A DNA stretch of 64,000 nucleotides from Pavona decussata (lineage: Eukaryota), in contig CDRNST010000215.1 of the NCBI GenBank assembly GCA_977016875.1, positions 2,480,001-2,544,000 on the forward strand, given 5' to 3'. A program made the translations under genes and the position numbers. The notes under the pieces are model-generated. The model made no database searches and was not told the origin of the DNA. It saw only the letters and a program-made list of their open reading frames with translations. Positions 7,201 to 22,813 of the stretch are shown here, one piece after another; position 1 is the first letter of the stretch, and every line of letters starts with the position of its first letter.

Positions 7201-10200
7201 CGTTCATCGTCCTCATCATCGGGTTGCAGCACCATCTTAGGCCTCAGTGTCCGGCCACGCTTGCTTTTCGTGGGTGCAGCGGGCCTTGGTGCTTCCACCA
7301 CCGGCTTAGTAAGTGTACGGATTACTTTGCGTACAAGGTACTTGCAACGGAGGCCATCAACGGAAACGAATTTTCTGTCTGTTATTTCTGTTGTCGTTGT
7401 GCCTTGATGAAAAGACAAAAGGGCAACAGTAAAAATCAATGACAGATAGCAAAGAAAAAGGATAAGGGCTCGTCTGTTTTTTAACCTTTACGTAAGTTCT
7501 CTTATATTCGTTCCTTACTCGCCGTATGCAAGCAGTTGATACATCATCTAACGCCCGTGAATTTGTGTAAAGTAAGCAAAATCATGTGCAAACTACACAC
7601 GTACAACAACGCTTCCACCAAAATCATTCATTGACAACGCCATAATCTTCCTATTCACAAAGCGCCCACAGCAACTGTGTGAACCTCACTATGATCTCAA
7701 AACTATCATTCAGGTGATCGGTACGAACGACTTGCTGTACCGGAATCGGATTTTCGGCAAAATAGAAATTAATAAAGCCCTAGCCCACAGGTTTCCATGA
7801 GCGTGAAAAGTGCGTCACCGACGTTCATGTGTCAACGGGCATAAATGCAAGGGCAAATAACTGAAAATGTATAACTGCTTACATTTGTGCAGGTCTTACT
7901 GCCGTACAAACTAATTTATACTAGCATAAATCTACATTTACACTACGCATAACCAGCCTTATGCAAATTACCTGAGCTAGTGTAGACCGTATTGCTGTTT
8001 CCACGCGGTGGCCTGACATTCATTTCATCCCATTTCAAACATGATTGCAGAACCCTTAGCTGCAATCCTGCACCAGCCAGCGTCTTCAAACTCTGTGTGC
8101 GAAATCGCCATGCAACCTTGAACGAAGGACGAGGGATTCCTGCCGGCCAGTTAACCCCGACTGCACGGGAACTATACACATATCCACTGACTTCCTTCAT
8201 CCCAGCCTTCCTTCCAAGCCTTTTGAGTTCGTGCTTTCTTAATGTAAATACACTTTTTACTGAATGACGCAGCGGCCATTTAGCAAGTCTTCGATTAAGC
8301 AGGGCACGAGGATCTTTGATGAGTGGCTCAAGGGATGGAAACTTCTCTTCTTTGATGGGTTTTGCCACCACCTTTGGTTTAACAACAATCTGAGTCTTCA
8401 CCTGGGCAGCCTGTTGCTGTGGCCGCTGCACAGTGATGGTGGCACCTGGTGTTGCTGTGCCAGCAGTCCTCTGAACAGTGGTAATTGGACGGTGTTGTAC
8501 AGCTGCGCCGGACACCTGCAATGTTATACTCTTAGGTACAGCTAGCCCCAATGGAGATCCTGCCTGCTGGGCAATAGCTGCCAGCTGTGAGCCCTGCAGG
8601 GTGATGGACCTGCCGTCTGGAGTCACCAGACGTATGAGCTGTGAAGGCCCAATGGTTGCACCAGATGCTGGAAGACTTGCAACTAAAGCAGCAATGCTCT
8701 TAACTGGGCCAACAGTGGACTGACCCACAGCTGTAGGCTGAGCGCTGACTCTTACTACATTTGATCCCTGTATGCCTGTGCTCTGAACAGGTGGTCTTGG
8801 TGATGGAAGTATGGGCTTAGGGCCTATTGGAACATACTGGGTCGTTTGTCCTTGAGGTCGAGTAGTAGCGGAAGCTTTCTGTGGATGAATGACTCTGACT
8901 GAAGTGTTCTGAACTGCAGGTGCTGCAGGTGAACTTTTGACAAGTGTCGTCTGAATGGACGGACAAACCATAGGAGATCCTCCTGTCACCCCACTCAGAG
9001 GACCTGTTTTGGCTACTCCAGGAACACCTGATACCACAGGCTGCATGCTTATGGAGGACGTTGAGGTAACTTTGGCTGCCAATACTGCGGCTGCTGTAGA
9101 CGCTGTAGGTACTGTAGATGGACTAGCAGTCATACTTACACCTTGTACTGGTCCTGATGGTAATGGAATTGACTGCTGTGATACTGACTGAGATGAAAGC
9201 ATTGCTGACACAGCAGTTGGTGGTGTACTGGACACACTAGTGGTTGTACCTGTTGAATGAGGACTTGCTGTCTTGTCAAGTGATAGCACTGTGGAAACTG
9301 CATGTAAGACATGAGCTGTAGAAGTCTGTGATGTTGTGTCAGGAACTGGCAAGCTTTCCTTAGACAGTTTGGAACTTCCTTCTTCCCTGACTACTACCTC
9401 AGTGTGAGACGTCTCAGATGTGCTTGTCTTTTCTGCTGGAAGTGACACCTGGGAGCAAGAGACTCCATCCATAGCAGAACTGCTCTTAAGTGTTGTTGCT
9501 CTGCTAGACTTCTCCATAGGAGATACCGAGACGACGTCAACATCCATAGGCTCGTCTTCCTGATTGCCGCTCTGCTTAGGATCTGCATTGACAGAAGCTT
9601 GTGAGACAGATGTTGTCACTGCAGTGCAGTCACTTGAGCTGCTTACTTCCACTGTGCTGTCCACTGACTTGGAATCTTGAGCTTCTGCTGTCAAACAACT
9701 GGTGCCCTCAGCTGCCCTTGATTCAACGTCACCTTCATTTACATCTGCTTCATTATCCTCACGCACACTTTCTTCAAGGGGTGGTTTACCCGCAGTATCT
9801 TCAGGAGTCACCGTTACTGTGCTCTGCTCATCACTGTAGTGATTTGCAGGTTTAGCTGTTAACTCGGCTGTCTGTGGTGCCTGTGACGATGAACTGGCAC
9901 TACTTTCTATTTTTTCATCCTTTGAAGCGGTTGTGCAAATGTCCTTTTCTGTAGCACTTGCATCAGCCTTTTCATCGTGGTTACAAAGGTTTTCTGAATA
10001 AAGATTGTCTGAACTACTCTTTGGCACAGTACAGTCGCCATCGTTTTCGACTGATGTAACATTATTTGAAAGTAGACTGCCATCTTTCATAACAACATCA
10101 TCATTACCCTTCATGCCTTCTTCCAAACCAGCCATTTGTTCAAAATGATTGTTGCTTTCCTTTTCAGTCTCAAGCAACACATCATCTAATTTTGGTTTAT

Positions 10201-13200
10201 TTTCTGTTGTCAAACTGCCACTCTCAACAGAACCTGTGAGTTGATTATCAAGTAAACCCTCCTTATTACTTGAAAGTTGTTCTTCCCTCAATTCTTGGTC
10301 ATTGTTCACAGTTAACTCCTCTACAGATTCAATTTCTTCCTCCTTTTCTTGAATTTGTCCATCCTTTGAGTCTAACGACTCCTCCGGCTTTAAACTTTCA
10401 AGTCCTCCTAAAATGTCAGAGTTTGCTACAACGTCCACACTACTTAGTGCTTTTGTTGATGCCTCATGTGAACCCTCATGAACAATATTTTCTTGGTCGT
10501 GATTTACCACATGCACATCAGATAGTTCTGTTAAATCTTCGTTTTGCTTCGATTCTTCACCATCAGTAGCTTTACAAAGTTGACTTTCTAAAGATGAAGG
10601 CTTTTCTTTTTGCCCCTCTTTGGTCAGGCCTGCCTCTGTTGTATTTTCACAGGCATTTTCACTGTCCTTCTTATCCATATCGTCCTCAGAGGCGACAATC
10701 TCTGACTCCTGGCTATGTGCTTGAGACCCTGAGAAATCATCAACATCTTCAACTTTGCAAGAAATATCTAGTATACCTGTATCTTGATGGCCATCAACTA
10801 GAGTTTCTTTTTCAGGGAGAGTAACAATTGAATTTGAAGACATCTGTGCCACTCTTGATTCCATTGATTTTACTGTTTCATCTTCTGCACATGATCCACC
10901 TGGAGTCATATTCATCAGGTCTGGCTTCTCAAAAATATCAGATTGGTCAGAGTCAAGAGATTTACAAACTGCACTTTGAGATTTCTGATCAGAAACATTC
11001 AAAGGCGAATCAGAAGAAAAAGGTTCTTGATCTTCAGAGGTTTCCTTGCCAGATGTCATTTCTGTGCTATCTTTTATACTGCTACCATCAATGGAAGTAT
11101 CTTTAGTTGGGCAATCAATGGAAACATCTTCTGTACATAACTTAGATATTTGATTATTGTCTCTGGTATTGACATCAGTGTAACTAGTCACAACTGGAAG
11201 TAGACTGTCACATTTTTTGATTACATCTGTAGTTTCACTAACGTCTGGACCTAAAGAGATGAGCTCTTTTTCAGAAGTGGTTTCTGAAGAGACCACTGAT
11301 GCCGATGAATCAAGCAAATCCACTGAGTCATTTACAGTTTCTGTAGTAGTTGAGACAGAGGATGCTACAGATTGTTCTGTCGATACACAGTCTGTTGATT
11401 TGCTATCCTCAGTTGATGATGTGGAATCCAAAGTTGACGCAGGTGTTGTCTCTGTAGCGGTTGGTACTGACGATGAAGAAAGAGGTGGACCTGCGCTAAC
11501 CGACTGCAAAAAGCACAAGTCTGGACCTGAAGAAGCCAAAGTATTATTTACAAGGGTTGCTTCAGAACTAGAAGACAAAGATACAGCAGAAGATGATGCA
11601 GTGACTAGTGAAGTGGATGAAGGTGCACTTGAAGAGACTTGGACAACAGATGAAGGAATTTCACCAGTGGAGGATGTTTCAGTTGGTAATATCTGAATGG
11701 ATGATGTCTTTGTTATTGAAGGAGGCTCTGAAACTGATGAGTTAGTGGAACTATCAGCAGTCATTTTAAGAGACGAGGAAACTGTCTTAGATAACAAATT
11801 TGTACTTGTAGACTCTGCTTGAGACGACAAAACAGGTACCACTGGACCTGGTTTAGAAGATGGAGGTTCTTCCAACACAGGCAAAGCCACTGACGAAATT
11901 GGTTGACTTGTTGTATGTGCAAGAGTGCATGATGGTGGCACTGATGAAGAAGATACTGGCACAGCAGAAGGAATCCCTGACAAAACTTGTGAATTTATTG
12001 TCTTTGTTGTCGAATGGACTGATGGCGACGACACATGCAAATTTGTTATTGTGGAATGGACTGATGGATTAACGGATGACTGAACAGAAGTAGCTGTACA
12101 ACTAAGAGTCTGTGGGACAAAATGAACAGGAGCTGAAGAGGCCGTGGATGTATTAGCAGTAGTTATCATCAACGTACTAGAATTTGAAGGACTTGAAGTG
12201 GAAGCTACTGCTGACGTCTGTGCAGATGACTGAGTTAACAATGTAGAAGTTGAACTTGGAGCAGTTTGAATAGCATTTTGCAATGCTGAAGAAGTTGATG
12301 AAGGTGCAACTAGAAGAGTTAAAGTATTCTGTACTGGTGTAGTAGTTGTGACTGCAGTGGTTGTTGTTGATTTAGTTTGAACTCCTTGTGGAGTTGCTGC
12401 ACTTTTCTCTTGTGGAAGAGATACCTTCTGAGAAGACGCCTGTTGTGCAGCTATTTTTGCAGCTTTATCTTGTTCCTTTTTCAACGCTTCTGCCTTTTTC
12501 TTCTCTCTTAAGGTAACAATCTTGTTAGTAGTGTCCAAAAGTTTGCGCTTTTTGTTGCCAAAAGTGTCCTTTTCATTTCGTGGACGTTTCCTTTTCCTGC
12601 ACTGCAGACCACTTGTCCACACCCACCCACCGCCGCCAAACAGCCTGTACTCCTCCCCTTTCTGTTTCCATACTTGGTGATGGGGCATCCATGTGTAATT
12701 CACTGTTAGGAAATATAAAAAAATAACAGAAAAGTAAATACACTTCAATTGCGAAAGTTTGACTTTATCAACAAAGTTGACAAGGTAATTTGGTCATACA
12801 TGTAAAGAGATTTGTGTGCTGACGTTTCTGGCATTAGCCCTTCATCAGAGCAAATTAAGGACAAACAAACCAAGGGCTAACACCAGACAGTGTGCGTCAC
12901 GACCCACAAAGGGTGCTGGGTAAAAATATGGAAATGCCTCATTTGCCTCTGGTCACGATCGAGTAAACATCTCCCGAACAGAAGACTTATGTCGATTTAC
13001 AGTCGCACTGAAACTGGGCATTCAAACTTTGCTTCCTTTTCCAAAATCTATCACTAAAGACAGCAATTTGGCAAATTTTAACGGTCTAGTGGCAGCCGTA
13101 GATGCTTTTTGTTGGATACACAAGGCAATTTCGTTGAGTTATTCCCAGTTCGGAGACAATCAAAGGCGAGAATTTTTTTTGTTTATTCTTATACTAGTAT

Positions 13201-16200
13201 TTTGTGCTGTCACGCCTGCTTTTAGACGCTTTATGATAAACAGATATTTAGACCGCGAGCGGTCGAGTGGTATCTTTCTCCTAAATTCTGACTTCTGCGG
13301 CACGCGATGGATCTATCGAGCGGTGAGGCCACGAGCCGCGAGTTCATTTTTGTAATTTGCATAATTTTATTGTTACTTTGCACGCGTGATCTAAGGAAAA
13401 AGTACGACTGTTCGCAGTGTAATTTTCATTTTTGTCGCTCATTTGTAGTTTACTTTTTTATCTCAGGGTAATAGAGATCTACTTTTCCTTCCTCTATTTG
13501 TTGGAGAGAAAAGCATTCGCCCGTTGGCTTTTTCCGGTCGGTTTCCCGGGAGTTGAGCTACTTTGTTTACACGATCTCTTCATAGATTCTCTATTAGTTC
13601 AATGGCTTCCAACGGAAAAACCATAAAGGGTAGACCCGGGTAGACCCAAAAAAATTCTAAAGTAGAAAGGATAAGCTAGCTTCATGTGCAAAAGTATTGC
13701 CCAAACCCAGCAAGAGTAAGTAGCTTTAGCCTCAAGAAATGCAGTAAATCAATGACCAAAACAACATGGCAGCAGGCGCGAGGTCGTCACCTTTGAAATG
13801 GCTACAAACGCGAACAAATGCTTCAGCTTAAAAAGTAACCTAATCAACATTAAGCCAATTTGTTCCTATAACTTTGAAACAAATTTCGACCGGGAAAAAA
13901 TGTCACAGACTTTGTTAATGACGAGATTCTCGACAGGCTGACCTTTCCAGACTGATGTTCATGAGCGCGAAGACTACTGATCAAATAACGCATTCTGATT
14001 GGTCGAATTTCGTGACGCACACCGCCTGGGCTAACACTCAAAACGTTAACACTCGAATCTCTTTACAGTGGCCAAATTGCCTTATTAACACTGTTGATAA
14101 AACCCCCGGGGGGTACTCCCTTATATGGGCTATATAGGTATGTGCGGCGCCAAAGGGTATGGTTTTTCGGCTGTTTTGGTCATAAATAGGGTATCGCTTT
14201 TAGCTATTTTGCCGCCATTTTGGTAATAAATAGGGTATAGATTTTTGCACTCTAGTCCTGGGTCCTTTTTTTTTTTAGAAAAAGCTACTTCAGGTAATAA
14301 ATAGGGTAAGGGTTTTGGGAAGCAGGCCTCACACCCCTACCCAATTTTTTTTGGAGTACCCCCCCCCCCCCCCCTGGGATAAAACCAAGCATTCGTTTCT
14401 ACTCCTCCACACCCTCTTATCCAAACTGTGATTAGTTTATCACGAGCACAGAAATATTAATAAAATAATAAAAAAATCTAATTTTTCCAGTGGAACTAGA
14501 ACCCAGAACCCAAACTCTAGTCAGATAAGCTGTGATCACAGGTTCATCTCCCATGCATCTTACTTTTTGCTGGAACTAATCAGCTCCCACATCGCATCAT
14601 CATTTATCAATCACACAATGCCACACACTATAACAAACCCTGTATGATCATGTGATAAGAAGAGTCACATAAAATCTCTAAACTTAAGACTCCACTGAAC
14701 ATGTATGTACATACCAAATCCCTTAGGATCCAGTTCAGGTTCCTCTTCTTCTTCTTTGTGATCCTTCTTCTTAGTTCCTACTTGTCGAGCCTCAGACATG
14801 ACTCGATGAAGTTCCACATGACCAACTGCATCATTCCATACAGGCAGATAGCAGATGGGTCTGATACAACTTTCAAGAAAGGACAATGCTGCCGCAAACT
14901 CTTCAGGAGTCTTTGACAAATGAACTGCCCTTACCCAAGTGGAGCGTTGTACTGGCCACGAAGGATGCATAAAAGCAGTTGGAACAGAATTCTCAAGGCC
15001 AACTATAGAAAACCGCAGTGTGTTGAGAATAACATCTTTACTCCCACAGGTATCTCCATGCCACTTGAATTCATTGAGGCTAAACTTGTGAGAGACACTG
15101 CGCTTTTTGTCTCGTTGATCCAATTGCTGCTGTTTGGTTAGTGCCAAGGCATTGCTTGTAAACTGATTGACGTACGACAAGTAATTGGCTTCTTGACCAA
15201 GCCTAAACACAGGTCTTTCAACCTCTTGTTTTGCTGCACCCAAGGTGTTTAACTGAGGCGGACTTGGGGTACCACTAGAGGACACAGCAATCAACTTACT
15301 GTCTGCTACTGATTTAACCAAGCTACTGTTTGTCAACAAGGATGGAGACCCTTGAGTCTTAGCAATGGCAGAACTGTTCACAATACTGCTAGCTTGGGTA
15401 CTTAGCTTGTTGCCACTTGCACTGATTTTAGCGTCAACAGTTTGATTGCTTGACACCATTGGTTGAACAGGTTTGTCAACAGACATCTTGCTGGGTAACT
15501 CATCTTTCGTGACATTCACAGATTTAGCAGAGACTTGGTCCTCTTTTCTCGTCAAGCTTTTATCAGCACCAGAGATTTTACTTTCACTGTCAGATGTACC
15601 CACAGGTTCAGATACAGCAGAGAGTTTACTTTCATTGACAGATTCACATCCAGGCATAGATACAATAGGAGTGTTACTTGCCTTCCCAGATTCACTGGTA
15701 GGCTTTGGTGCAACAGGGATTTTAACTTCATGACCAGATTCATGTGTTGTCTCAGATGTAGCAGGGATTTGACTTTCTTTCTCAGATTCACCCTCAGGCT
15801 TAGATCCTTCTGTCCCTTCCCCATGGCCTGCTTCTGACCTCATTTTAGGGGGATGGGCCTCCTTTTTGTCCCCATCCACACCTGTTTCAGCACTGGTCAA
15901 GCTTGATAAAGTCTTGGCATCCCCTTCAGCAGTATCAAGCTTCTTATCCTCGCCAGGCTCTTTATCAGTCTCCGCTGCTCCCCCTATCTTGGAGTGGTCT
16001 GACAAAACAGGAGACCTTCTTCTAGCATAAGGACTATCTTGGACAGCAGGTCTTCTATCTCTTAGCACCATTTGTTTCTCTGTACTAGGGCTGCTGGAGT
16101 TCTCAGCCTGTTGCCTTGTCACAATCTTCTTTACTTCATTATCAGGAACAAATGTAAGAATAGCAGAGGCAGAGATTGGTTTTGGTGAAGGCACTGCACT

Positions 16201-19200: not shown

Positions 19201-22200
19201 AAAAAAAAAAAAACAAGACGGAGCTGCCCATTTTTGACCAACTTTGATGATTTCACGTGTTTGATATAGTTTCTAAAACCATTAATAATTTGACTTCAAA
19301 TTTTAATAATTCTTGAGCTTGAGAAAATGTTTACCATGACCAGGGGCCCATTTCTCGAAAGTCTGGTAACTTACCGGACCCGATAAGTGTCTTTAGTGAT
19401 AAATGTTTCTTACAGAAGTCAATTTTTGTTAGCTTTGAATAATAAATTTTAAAATCTTATAATTCCATGAAAACATTGGCCATGGTACCATGTTTGTAAT
19501 CACTGTGTAATCGGCGCAAAAACATTTCAAAATATACTTACTGGGCCCGATAAGTTACCAGGACTTTCGAGAAACTGGCCCCAGGGCACCTAATATCACA
19601 AAAATTGATGCGAAACTAGGCTTACGATAGGTTGCTATAAATCTTAAGAAATGGATGATGGATAAAAATAGCAAATGGAGAGATGCAACAGGGTCCGAAA
19701 TTGCGCTTTCCTGGTCACCAATGCGACTAAAAATTTTGCGCTGGCGACCAGAATTTCACAACTAGTCGCCAGCGGGCGATTAGCTATTTCATGCCACGAT
19801 CATTAAACAAACAATAACTTTGATTTTCAGCCAAAACGATTAAAAATAAAATTCAAAGCCGCCCGCCAATTGGTTACTTACTTTTTACCTTTCCACTGCT
19901 TTTGAAGTATAAAACCGATTTTCCTGTTATTTTAAATCTATCACAACGCTTCACAGCTCGAGCGGTGCGAAGCTTCGCCGCCATGTTTTAAGAACGAGAA
20001 ATGCTGCACGGTTGTGGCCTGGTGCGAGCAACATGGCGATCCGTCGATCGTCTTGACAGAACGCGAAAGGAAAGATCGTTTACGGTTTTGAACATAGAGC
20101 AAAGAACCAACCGGCAGTTTTTTAATCGGGTACATTTCTTCTCCAAAAGGTAGAGACAAGAGAGGGTATAAAGTTGACTTAAAACATTTAGCAGTCTTAT
20201 GAAACTGCGTATATAGCCGGCATTCGATTCATTCGTCGTGGTTTTCAGTGGTAGGTGTACAAATCTCCATGGGGCCCCAAACGCAAACACGTTCTCTTCG
20301 TTCTGATTCTTAAAAGAAAAATTGGCGACCAGAATTTTCCATCTGGCAACCAAAAATTTTGGTTTGTGTTTCGCTGCGAGGGAAAAATTTTAGTGACACT
20401 TTTTTTTTCTGCTTTTTGGCGACCACATTTTTCCATATGGCGACTGACAAAAAAAATTTCAGTCACCACTTGGCGCCTGCCTAAAAAAGTTAATTTCAGA
20501 CCCTGTGCAACATGTGCTTTTTTTTTACAATAAATTATTGACCTCAAAATGTTGAAATGCTGTTTGTTCAAAGTATCCCCGTCCCTCTCCTTGCAAGCAA
20601 TGTTATTTAAAAGTAAAACAAAATGGCGAGGACGTGTGTGCCGATTTGCTCAACCAACATTGAACCAGGAGAAAGTGTTGGAGTGTTTGTGTCATTGCAG
20701 CTCAACAAGAAAAATTGCCAGTCATAAAGAAAGTGAAGACCTCCTCTTTTGCTGTCTTTTCATCATTTTCAAACTCTGACAAATGCAAATCGTAGATGAG
20801 TTTTGAAGTTCACAGTTCACAATGTTGGTGAAAAGCCACAGTACTGTCCAGATTTAACAGTTTTTGTCTGTTTTGACTTTGGCATCCAGCAAAGAGTTGT
20901 CCTGAGTAGGCAAATAAATGCCTTTCTGTTGCAATGTTCCCAACTATGGCTACAATAACCCTATTGCTAAGATCATCCTTTAGCCTAAGAGGATAAACTT
21001 AAGACTTCCTCGTGTAAACCATATGCAGAAAACATAAGGCACTAAGTTGATCCACCTGCTAGGATTGTACTCCCTCCAATCCCCCATGTAAACAGAGCCC
21101 ACCCTAACAATAGCTGTGGTACTCCTGAAAAAAGGCACTTGTGATTTTATGATACACAAAAGGAAAACAAAAGCAAAATCACTATTAAGATTAAAATTAA
21201 TCCTATACGTTAATAAAACATTAATGCCGAGCACAACCGTGGTTGATTTTTCACACCATAGAACAATCACTCACAGCAAGAACAGAGACTATAAATTGAA
21301 TGGGGATGCATAATTTGATTAGTCCTCCATGTTGGAGAAAATACTTACACAAACAAACGCCTGGCTAAAAACCAGTACTTTCTCTCCTCCCTGTCTACCC
21401 CCAAAGGAGTGTTTCTGAGCCATCCATCTCTATTCCAATCAGGTAGGCAGTCTGTGACACCCTTCAGTCGGTGCATCTCGCATACGGGACACAGCCAATC
21501 GCCATCAGGCACTTCTTCCAACGGCGGCTTCAAACAGTGAAGATGGTAGACAGCAGGGCAGTTTTCACAGCACAACAAATCGCCCATTTTACAACAGTTT
21601 CGGCAGTGATCCTCCGATTCTACCATTCCCTCGTTCATTATGTCGTACCTGACTGAATTTGAAGCGAGAAATTGATCGCAGAGCCGCTGTAGAACCTTCA
21701 ATCTCTTTTCCGCCGATGAGAATGGAAAGGGGTTTTCCTTTTCGCTCGCACTGACAGCCGACGCAACGTCGCCGAATTCCGTCTTATCCGACATGATGTA
21801 GCTCCGAATAACATCAGGCCAAGTAAAGTCGCTTAAACAGTACATGAGAACGTTGAAGCTATCTTTCTCGTCGCTCGCTACAAATGTCAATCCACTAGTT
21901 TCATCCTCGGAGAGGAGAAATCGGATCAACGCGAGGTGTATTTGTGCAAGCAAAGAAGACTGGTCCGGAGTCTTAATTGCCCCGCAAAAGTCTTCAAACC
22001 TAAACGGAGATAACCGAATGATTCGGCTAAAATGTCTAAGGACCTCATAAATTCCTAAGGCTTGTAAAATATACTCCGGCTCAAGTAAAAGATCGTCTGA
22101 TGATGGAGCTAAGTTGATAGGCGTCACGACTCTCAGTGGCTCAACATAACGAATTTTCGTGCAAGGAGTATTGGAAATTGAGGAAGCACGACTAGAAACA

Positions 22201-22406
22201 GAGTCGTTGTCACTATCCGAACCCGACGACTCCATCCCGTAGTATTTCCGCGGCGTTGTCGAACTAAAACCTCGGGTTTTAATAACTTGTGGAGAACAGA
22301 CACGCGGGCTAGGATGTCCGCCATGTTGGTTGGTTGCACTCGAGACATTTGGCGTTTTGGCACTTTGGGACGGATTTTTGGGCGGTCTTCCCCTTCCTCG
22401 CTTCAT
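1249..22406 (-). CDS. BPTF: Nucleosome-remodeling factor subunit BPTF/NURF301, 3'-partial (rest of last PHD and bromodomain lie beyond the window start)
   Basis: Phase-consistent exons: 22406-21349, 18976-18771, 17395-17255, 16238-14715, 12702-7972, 7402-7155, 4576-4000, 3594-3396, 2512-2132, 1425-1249 (about 3,080 codons). AT-hook KRGRGRPPK, DDT region (IYEVLRHFSRIIRLSPFRFEDF), PHD (EDHCRNC...DWLCPVC), RKYWFLARRLFV, HQVWKQKGEEYR, LELWEIR, C-terminal PHDs (LFCICKKPY..FYIGCDMCANWFHG; LYCVCRQPY). Confidence 0.95.
2903..3050 (+). mobile_element. Degraded tRNA-derived SINE
   Basis: TAGCTCAGTG A-box remnant and degenerate B-box; related minus-strand copy near 26340-26450. Confidence 0.45.
3790..3963. 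mobile_element. Small palindromic MITE (AAAATGGC-type TIR); relatives at about 6100-6265 and 42580-42712
   Basis: CCTACGCAAAAATGGCTGACATTTTAAT and ATTAAATGTCAGCCATTTTTGCATAGG; internal TAGCCTCACTAACCTCGTT / AACGAGGCTAGTAA shared with the 6100-6265 copy. Confidence 0.75.
6300..6793. mobile_element. MITE
   Basis: TIRs TACCCTGGGTACCAGAGG and CCTCTGGCACCCAGGGTA. Confidence 0.75.
12818..12851 (-). ncRNA. Minimal type I hammerhead-ribozyme motif (Penelope-associated), stem II closing pair mutated
   Basis: Minus strand reads GCU CUGAUGA A GGGC UAAU GCCA GAAAC GUC AGC: CUGANGA and GAAA cores, GUC site, 3-bp stem I. Confidence 0.6.
12884..14028. mobile_element. Non-autonomous TIR DNA transposon (1,145 bp, 19-bp TIR, 9-bp TSD) carrying an EXO1-like fragment
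   Basis: TIRs CAGACAGTGTGCGTCACGA and reverse complement CAGGCGGTGTGCGTCACGA (17/19); perfect TSD GGCTAACAC at 12875-12883 and 14029-14037. Confidence 0.85.
13014..13620 (+). pseudogene. EXO1: Decayed exonuclease 1 (XPG-N/PIN) 5' fragment inside the transposon
   Basis: CTG-GIQTLLPF...FNGLVAAVDAFCWIHKA resembles EXO1 MGIQGLL..VAVDTYCWLHKG. CTG in place of ATG, donor reads AG|GCGAG at 13165/6, acceptor TCTCAG at 13466, second exon frameshifted. Confidence 0.75.
14105..14378. mobile_element. MITE with CCCGGGGGGTACTCC-type TIRs, 8-bp TSD
   Basis: TSD ATAAAACC at 14097-14104 and 14379-14386; right end GGAGTAC(C)nTGGG. Confidence 0.85.
16355..16750 (-). mobile_element. Penelope-like retroelement GIY-YIG endonuclease C-terminal remnant
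   Basis: Frameshifted translation ELQPVFTSKRILEDLK..CVVYEFKCDL..HKHSAIRKHLRDDH..GKLECLSFEMLLIRIKRP*LNTQADSICA resembles the PLE GIY-YIG C-terminus. Confidence 0.75.
17469..17932. mobile_element. MITE with internal TCCCAGA/TCGGGA subrepeats
   Basis: AAGCCTATTTTTCATATGACAGGAAAATCC and GGATTTTCCCGACATTTGAAAACTGGGCTT. Confidence 0.7.
19071..19153. repeat. Perfect 32-bp inverted repeat (hairpin)
   Basis: ATCAAATAGAAGAAAGATCCTCGCAGTTACTA and its exact reverse complement. Confidence 0.9.
19343..19582. mobile_element. MITE (PIF/Harbinger-like)
   Basis: GGGGCCCATTTCTCGAAAGTC and GACTTTCGAGAAACTGGCCCC. Confidence 0.75.
19689..20505. mobile_element. Non-autonomous CAG...CTG transposon with 5-bp TSD (hAT5-like)
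   Basis: CAGGGTCCGAAATT and AATTTCAGACCCTG; TSD TGCAA on both sides. Confidence 0.8.
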
Positions 22407-22813
22407 TTCATCGATGTAAATTATAGAGTGCAGCCAGATCACATGAAGTAATGTGCATTTAGCTGCCTCCCTTCAGCTTTTAGTGGTATATTCTCCTCTT
22501 TCTCTTCAGTTCACTTCTCAGAAGCCACATTTCTTACTTCGCGGGGAAAGAACACTGCTATAGTCACGTGACCCTCCCAAAATGCATCATGCATATTCAA
22601 CTTAGAATTTTTTGGCTGTTTGAATAAAGGATTATAACAATATTCAAGCTTATTCTTAAAAGAAATTAATCCTAAAGAATCTTGAGAAAAGGAAAACTAT
22701 AAAAAGATGAGGTCAGGTGTAAATTTCCGCCTTTTTCAGACTGTCTCATTTCTTTGCCTTCATACTTCTCCCATAATACCTTGCGAACCAAGAAGACTTT
22801 CTTTCATTCCAAA
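22407..22813. promoter_or_regulatory. Bidirectional promoter region BPTF/AIMP2
   Basis: Divergent start codons with 407 bp between them; palindromic E-box GTCACGTGAC at 22563-22572; YY1-like AAAATGGCGG over the AIMP2 ATG. Confidence 0.75.

Follow-up and report, generated by a model that had tools for sequence, protein, structure and literature searches.

Mutator-like elements (MULEs) typically generate 9-bp target site duplications (TSDs), and XPG-type nucleases are a hallmark of Academ among transposons. In AcademX, the TSD is 3 to 4 bp long and the XPG nuclease is part of the transposase protein. Academ elements carry the gene for a helicase or a nuclease, and the TSDs of AcademH are 9 or 10 bp long (PMC10045372); AcademH has been reported in Basidiomycota (PMC10799480). 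Here, we discuss an element in a 64,000-nucleotide stretch of DNA, referred to as the window, from the coral Pavona decussata (GenBank assembly GCA_977016875.1, contig CDRNST010000215.1, positions 2,480,001 to 2,544,000, forward strand). The element occupies window positions 12884-14028, is 1145 bp long, and carries the remains of an EXO1-like nuclease gene. It is a copy of a non-autonomous cut-and-paste DNA transposon family with terminal inverted repeats (TIRs). With a probability of roughly 0.7, we consider this 1.1-kb family to have arisen by internal deletion from a P-like line of two-gene transposons that has its own EXO1-like nuclease/HIRAN gene and generates 9-bp TSDs. An earlier examination of the letters (the sequence-only reading) had offered two origins, the capture of host EXO1 by an animal Pack-type element, or deletion from a family encoding its own EXO1-like nuclease. 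The second origin is favored: the same TIR precedes a related nuclease gene elsewhere in the genome, the end blocks are found in other families, and the nuclease gene has a transposase partner.

The features of the element are as follows, with C and a number denoting contigs of this coral genome and L and a number denoting fetched loci, some of which are from other assemblies.

12875-12883: left copy of the TSD, 9 bp, GGCTAACAC
12884-12902, plus strand: left TIR, 19 bp, CAGACAGTGTGCGTCACGA, with two G-to-A changes relative to the family form CAGGCGGTGTGCGTCACGA
12903-13013, plus strand: nuclease-side subterminal leader (~110 bp), with three blocks conserved across families in the alignment with L034, L050, L037, L036, and L052
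13014-13165, plus strand: exon 1 relic of an EXO1-like (XPG_N) gene, from Pfam XPG_N, EXO1 in PDB, and identity to L034 exon 1
13166-13466, plus strand: relic of a phase-2 intron, GC...AG, with position and phase as in intron 1 of L034 and of the presumed host EXO1
13467-13552, plus strand: exon 2 relic, reaching the position of the FDG motif, from the alignment to L034 exon 2
13553-14009: internal 3′ segment, the presumed transposase-side end of the parent, in which only the CCAAT-like block at 13996-14008 points that way
14010-14028, minus strand: right TIR, 19 bp, TCGTGACGCACACCGCCTG, identical to the family form
14029-14037: right copy of the TSD, 9 bp, GGCTAACAC

The 19-bp CA...TG inverted ends and the perfect 9-bp TSD are as the sequence-only reading had described them. 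In the window copy, the two TIRs agree at 17 of 19 positions, and most other copies carry the perfect CAGGCGGTGTGCGTCACGA. When the genome (602 Mb in 1180 contigs) was searched for this 19-mer with at most one mismatch, 157 matches were found, compared with 0 for the reversed control; hence, the TIR pattern is not a chance occurrence. The search with the whole element gave 386 first-look candidates, of which 40 were scored, and approximately 30 copies are full-length, i.e., 1.11 to 1.16 kb long with 85 to 95% identity. Among 30 fetched copies, 24 have a perfect 9-bp TSD and one has a TSD with a single mismatch, while the TSD sequences and the flanks are unrelated from copy to copy. Moreover, if small indels are tolerated at the left tip, the copies L006 and L029 also have a perfect 9-bp TSD. 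The duplicated 9-mers are only weakly biased, toward G at position 1 and toward C at position 9. Kimura distances to the family majority sequence (derived by majority rule and used for local comparison) have a mean of 4.2% and range from 2.3 to 6.7%, with 6.1% for the window copy. Judging from these distances, the burst of the family is old but coherent. Shorter deletion derivatives are also present, with paired ends 311 and 738 bp apart.

Exon 1 of the nuclease relic (the frame at 13014-13165) translates as LGIQTLLPFPKSITKDSNLANFNGLVAAVDAFCWIHKAISLSYSQFGDNQR. It matches Pfam XPG_N (PF00752) with 22.1 bits, the cut-off being 22, and an E value of 2e-4; the score of the family copy L010 (C31) is 26.7 bits. 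Human EXO1 (residues 1-39, E 2.4e-5) is the sole match of exon 1 among all PDB sequences. The exons were compared one at a time, and the kinship of the nuclease was judged from pairwise identities. Exon 2 is considered homologous because it can be aligned to exon 2 of the EXO1-like gene at L034 (see below). Together, these data agree with the view that two decayed exons of an EXO1-like N terminus are present. The phase-2 intron between them had been placed correctly with respect to both coordinates and phase; its donor is GC and not GT, and its acceptor is AG.

The stub is dead and has no coding role. A complete catalytic core is lacking, i.e., there is no XPG_I part and no ATG, FSG replaces FDG, and the frame is broken. 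In the window family, CTG takes the place of the ATG start codon that related families have. The family majority has FSG at the FDG motif, and exon 2 of the window copy is frameshifted relative to this majority. As the majority already has the CTG start, the GC donor, and FSG, the master that was amplified was already a dead deletion derivative. The longest open reading frame (ORF) inside the element, 108 amino acids, spans only the nuclease stub and the intron read-through, and the element has no intact transposase gene. The nuclease homology ends near 13552, which we take as the putative deletion junction.

Judged by sequence identity, the closest genomic relative of the stub is the gene at L034 (C274). 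This locus begins with an identical 19-bp TIR, which is followed by 90 bp at 81% identity to the window family and then by a near-intact EXO1-like gene. Exon 1 of the L034 gene (MGIKTLLPFLKNV...CWLHKAIASSLSRFDDERR) is followed by a short phase-2 intron, exon 2 (...KKIQPLVVFDGILLPGKE...) carries FDG, and of the two additional exons, the last one contains the XPG_I core VVAPYEADAQIAYL...TEDSDLLAYGC. Both XPG_N and XPG_I (58 bits) are recognized, and the XPG_I exon matches EXO1 with an E value of 6e-12 compared with ~2e-3 for RAD2 and FEN1. The identity of exon 1 to L034 is 59% for the window copy and 63% for the family majority, while exon 1 is 46% identical to the presumed host EXO1 (C126) over 39 residues. 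Beyond its first 90 bp, L034 is single-copy, and its other end is lost in a tandem array. This array (L034:3100-8700, C274) lies directly behind the truncated EXO1-like gene and has a period of ~1.6-2 kb, and each of its units has a ~99-codon ORF (MVASILVRGRNCTRKTSPITR...).

These comparisons bear on the suggestion that the element is of Pack-type, in which case exon 1, intron 1, and exon 2 of host EXO1 would have been taken up at the DNA level by an unrelated non-autonomous transposon that amplified afterward. The intron agrees exactly in position and phase with intron 1 of the presumed host EXO1 on C126, and the identities to host EXO1 (46% for exon 1 and 65% for the XPG_I exon of L034) are no lower than the identities between transposon lineages. 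However, exon 1 of the stub is nearer to the TIR-linked L034 gene than to host EXO1, the distance between the nuclease gene and the homologous ends is the same in amphioxus and in several diverged families, and across genomes the gene forms a fusion with HIRAN and has a transposase as its partner. This recurrence across families and genomes implies that the capture long predates the window family. A recent animal Pack-type capture of host EXO1 is therefore very improbable, and the cargo would instead be the partner lineage's own gene.

The intron is in phase 2 and is located 25 codons before the G of FDG in both the presumed host EXO1 and L034, and 24 codons before it in the window family. The sequence-only reading had taken the retained intron to indicate an origin at the DNA level. 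Given that position and phase are shared between the presumed host EXO1 and the gene of the transposon, this holds, but at an older level. In our reading of the sequences, a genomic copy of EXO1 would have entered an ancestor of the lineage long ago at the DNA level, and the stub in the window would have been inherited from that resident gene.

The ends of the element are not confined to the 1.1-kb family. In the window copy, the blocks of the leader are located at 12907-12927 (CAAAG..TGGGTAA), 12938-12947 (CTCATTT), and 12961-12973 (GAGTAAACATCTC). In L034, L036, and L037, the order after the tip is CAAAG..ATGGGTAA, CTCATTT, and GAGTAAACATCTC, followed by EXO1-like exon 1. The tip CAGGYGGTG is present upstream of EXO1-like first exons at L036 (C345), where the variant is CTGGTGGTG, and at L037 (C96), as well as at the nuclease-side end of L052 from the amphioxus Branchiostoma belcheri. 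In L052, the tip and the first block are clearly alike, and the later blocks weakly so. Two further 1.1-kb subfamilies (L049-L051) have the same end blocks. The conserved leader blocks are putative transposase-binding and/or promoter sequences. At the opposite end, the block at 13996-14008, read inward from the right tip, is AATCGACCAATCA; it is CCAAT-like, lies ~25-40 bp inside the tip, and is common to the right ends of the window family and of a 14-kb element on C345. This feature is consistent with an origin of the right part of the 1.1-kb element from the promoter end of the transposase gene in the parent. Behind the EXO1-like gene at L037 (L037:6100-9460, C96), there are Cys/His-rich ORFs on the minus strand that have no Pfam match and are unrelated to the P-like transposase discussed below. 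The EXO1-like module may travel also with another kind of element.

Longer relatives with two genes are found in the coral and in amphioxus. On C38 and C345, EXO1-like exons are followed by a HIRAN ORF on the same strand (Pfam E values of 3.8e-7 and 2e-9, respectively) and then by a large gene on the opposite strand. The latter has at least four exons, is without a Pfam match, and is convergent with the nuclease-HIRAN gene. Partial layouts are seen on C49 (XPG followed by HIRAN) and C273 (the large gene facing XPG). Genome-wide, the last exons of the large gene are positioned tail to tail with HIRAN ORFs on many contigs, and XPG_I matches lie beside them on C38, C345, C49, and C273. In B. belcheri (L052, GCA_019207075.1), a homologue of the large gene, encoding 1181 amino acids, faces a convergent 635-amino acid gene that combines XPG_N, XPG_I, and HIRAN. 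HIRAN-like ORFs convergent with a large-gene homologue are also found in Branchiostoma lanceolatum (L054, GCA_927797965.1) and at L055 (GCA_035083965.1) and L056 (GCA_039555335.1), while no partner gene was seen beside the homologue at L053 (GCA_964340395.1). The related elements on C38 and C345 and in B. belcheri combine a transposase with an EXO1-like gene; none of these has ends identical to those of the window family.

One of these relatives is a complete element of 10.1 kb (L055:6874-16997), in which the transposase gene and a convergent HIRAN-like gene are enclosed by 25-bp TIRs (TAGAGGAGGTCGC...). It is flanked by a perfect 9-bp TSD, GTTTCAGGG, and therefore the 9-bp rule belongs to the P-like transposase lineage. 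For other relatives, the ends are less clear. No inverted repeats were found at the ends of the C35 and C38 elements, the latter of which is cut off at its nuclease end by a host exon with NHL repeats, and no clear element ends were seen at L053 and L054. The L052 copy is one-ended: its nuclease-side end is intact, but it lacks the transposase-side end, and the satellite phase does not close. This B. belcheri two-gene element is located within an array of a 387-bp satellite (L052:1-9455 and 21943-26605, JAFMNY010000011.1). In the transposase and HIRAN element on C35 (L040 and L041, C35:3751220-3759290), no EXO1-like part was found upstream of the HIRAN exon. Judging from C35 and L055, the nuclease module seems to be optional within the lineage.

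What kind of transposase does the large gene encode? One of its exons, 332 amino acids long, was compared with 1.84 billion representative proteins using HMMER, which gave 865 relatives at E ≤1e-3, including full-length models of 750 to 1180 amino acids. Of 47 members, 18 match Pfam TNP-like_RNaseH_N (PF21787) at E ≤0.1; one is above the cut-off (27.9 vs 24.6) and most are below it, and P0009 and the coral exons gave no match to PF21787. The nearest named ESM Atlas clusters, with respect to features and shape, are P/THAP9 transposases. Acidic residues at IKAD, TDGE, and DDVE are conserved, as is a DxxH motif, and the first half of the RNase H domain is interrupted by a helical insertion of ~130 residues. 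The protein thus has the RNase H fold of DDE transposases together with the architecture of the P element. Pfam scans of eight long members revealed no THAP finger and only weak Myb/SANT-like matches at the N terminus. The lineage possesses a divergent, recognizably P-like DDE transposase with a P element/THAP9 fold.

The identity of the transposase and the TSD of the L055 element are relevant to the Mutator link that had been raised on the basis of the 9-bp TSD. According to this alternative, the family would consist of non-autonomous MULEs, and the likeness to the P-like two-gene elements would be due to a shared captured end only. In its favor, no master with exactly the same ends was found, such that the mobilizing enzyme is deduced indirectly. 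However, blocks at both ends are common to the window family and the C345 two-gene element, a complete P-like/HIRAN element (L055) has a 9-bp TSD of its own, and the TIRs are short (19 bp) with CAGG tips. Moreover, the related long elements carry a P-like transposase and no MULE gene: no MULE domain was detected in any scanned ORF or at the related loci. As the associated transposase is P-element-like, the link to Mutator is unsupported, and among the explanations discussed here we regard it as the most improbable.

A different alternative is that the lineage has already been catalogued as Academ, within an animal branch of AcademH. The element would then be a non-autonomous Academ and nothing new in kind. 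This animal branch of AcademH would include a sublineage with an XPG nuclease. Among the papers available to our literature search, none joins the HIRAN domain with a DNA transposon, nor Academ with an XPG nuclease. The 9-bp TSDs of the window family and of the L055 element agree with the 9- to 10-bp criterion for AcademH (PMC10045372), and besides P/THAP9, one of the nearest structural clusters is unnamed and comprises mostly Basidiomycota. Against this assignment, neither the long transposase homologues nor the annotated neighbors at six loci revealed a helicase, i.e., none lies beside or within any transposase gene examined. In addition, the partner is HIRAN with or without EXO1, encoded by a separate convergent gene and not fused to the transposase, and the transposase is recognizably P-like. 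We consider an assignment to Academ less likely than not, although it should be taken more seriously than either Pack-type capture or a MULE origin.

Returning to descent from a P-like two-gene line by internal deletion, several observations weigh against it. An autonomous copy with the same TIR at both ends was not found among the inspected sites, and genome-wide none of the 157 TIR matches is close to a transposase match. A 5.1-kb copy on C12 (L031) was considered as a candidate master and rejected; it consists of the 1.1-kb element and ~3.9 kb of nested repeats, and it has no long ORF. From its sequence, L034 is likewise a sister of the window family and not its master, because it retains a single end and is just 81% identical to the family over its first 90 bp. 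The likeness of the 3′ ~480 bp to a transposase-side end is limited to the 13-bp CCAAT block; when the 3′ half of the majority sequence was compared by blastn and tblastx with the regions on the transposase side in C345, C38, and C35, no matches were obtained. Furthermore, 8 bp are missing from the right tip of the 14-kb element on C345, which is flanked not by a 9-bp TSD but by a 758-bp direct repeat (70016-70773 and 84991-85752, 98.7% identity; L048, L036, and L047). The direct repeat could reflect a rearrangement, aberrant transposition, or a haplotype-duplication artifact on a small contig. Finally, the XPG-N similarity that had been proposed for the stub stands for exon 1, just above the cut-off, and not for exon 2, which on its own has no match in Pfam.

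With these points in mind, the origin of the 1.1-kb family by deletion can be modeled as follows. The parent would have had a left TIR, a leader of ~110 bp, a multi-exon EXO1-like gene (fused to HIRAN in the longer relatives), a convergent multi-exon transposase gene, the CCAAT leader, and a right TIR. The deletion would have spanned the whole region from exon 2 of the nuclease gene up to the last ~480 bp, leaving the sequences needed in cis for mobilization in trans, i.e., the 19-bp TIRs and the subterminal blocks, together with the dead nuclease stub. Mobilization in trans would be carried out by a P-like DDE transposase that recognizes the CAGGYGGTG tips and the subterminal blocks, and a staggered cut of 9 bp in the target followed by gap repair would result in the 9-bp TSD. 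In this scenario, we infer that the window family itself was moved by the P-like transposase.

By analogy with the known activities of its domains, the EXO1-HIRAN protein may aid transposition. The P element transposase leaves long 3′ overhangs at the excised ends. HIRAN in HLTF binds 3′-OH ends, and EXO1 is a 5′ to 3′ exonuclease and a flap nuclease. Speculatively, HIRAN would bind the 3′ overhangs generated by P-type staggered cleavage, while EXO1 would resect or trim the 5′ strands, which would allow repair of the gaps and of the donor break. An equally speculative alternative is that HIRAN and EXO1 drive resection of the donor break and that the sister chromatid then serves as the template from which the element is restored. 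It is tempting, although tentative, to go one step further and suggest that the coral and amphioxus elements represent an undescribed P-like branch with a convergent HIRAN gene, with or without EXO1, with 9-bp TSDs, and with the accessory protein as part of the transposition machinery. If this is true, with HIRAN holding the 3′ ends and EXO1 trimming the 5′ strands, the protein would be an end-processing factor encoded by a transposon. To our knowledge, no factor of this kind is known for P, hAT, or Mutator elements.

The insertion site of the window element is the loop of a foldback host repeat that resembles a miniature inverted-repeat transposable element (MITE), the arms of which are 78 to 82% complementary.

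12764-12840: left arm of the MITE-like foldback host repeat; the inverted-repeat pairs I1 and I2 bracket the insertion
14038-14101: right arm of the same repeat, with the inverted-repeat pairs I1 and I2

This target repeat is present in high copy number, with 833 first-look candidates in the genome, often as neighboring matches on the plus and minus strands. To the left, an open frame of 1601 codons on the minus strand (window 7943-12748), rich in Ser and Thr, ends ~135 bp before the element. This frame is probably a giant exon of a host gene, which would place the element just upstream of this gene or in a neighboring intron. To the right, the flank at 14094-14430 runs into another common repeat (...CCCCGGGGGGTACTCCCTTATATGGGCTATATAGGTATGTGCGG...), which looks like an abundant short interspersed element of the same genome.

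Taken alone, the 1.1-kb element is an ordinary dead passenger, and its value lies in pointing to the lineage. In that lineage, an EXO1-like gene has been resident long enough to be common, together with the ends, to coral and amphioxus. A transposon that brings HIRAN and EXO1 suggests that repair or end processing is, in some cut-and-paste elements, provided by the element itself and not by the host. The 1.1-kb family constitutes a natural mini-transposon with which this idea can be tested. In addition, there is a warning for annotation, since what is annotated as an EXO1-like or HIRAN "gene" in the genome of a coral or an amphioxus may be cargo of a transposon.

How does the window family compare with known systems? 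Compared with FEN1, GEN1, or RAD2, eukaryotic EXO1 is by far the better match for both exon 1 of the stub and the XPG_I exon of L034, and the position and phase of intron 1 are as in the presumed host gene. The stub differs in being truncated and dead, and its intact relatives have HIRAN after the nuclease core, at the place where host EXO1 presumably carries a tail that binds mismatch-repair proteins. As in Pack-MULEs and other Pack-type elements, a host-like gene fragment with an intron is located between TIRs. The cargo in the window is, however, a stub of the lineage's own long-resident gene and not the result of a recent host capture. The family also resembles Ds elements derived from Ac, as well as KP and other deleted P elements, in that both ends and remnants of the parent gene are retained, movement is in trans, the length is uniform, and the copies number in the tens to hundreds. 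In contrast to the situation for these deletion elements, no intact parent of the window family with identical ends was found at the inspected sites of the assembly.

As regards Academ, there are similarities in the cut-and-paste mode, the XPG-family nuclease, the animal hosts, and the 9-bp TSD, which is as in AcademH (PMC10045372). The differences are that no helicase was found and that the nuclease here is encoded by a separate, convergent gene fused to HIRAN. With respect to P element/THAP9, to which the transposase is related in fold, the TSD of the Drosophila P element is 8 bp compared with 9 bp in the window family and the L055 element. Moreover, the lineage has a weak Myb/SANT-like N terminus instead of the THAP finger and an insertion of ~130 residues in the RNase H domain, and it possesses a second, convergent gene that encodes HIRAN with or without the EXO1-like nuclease.

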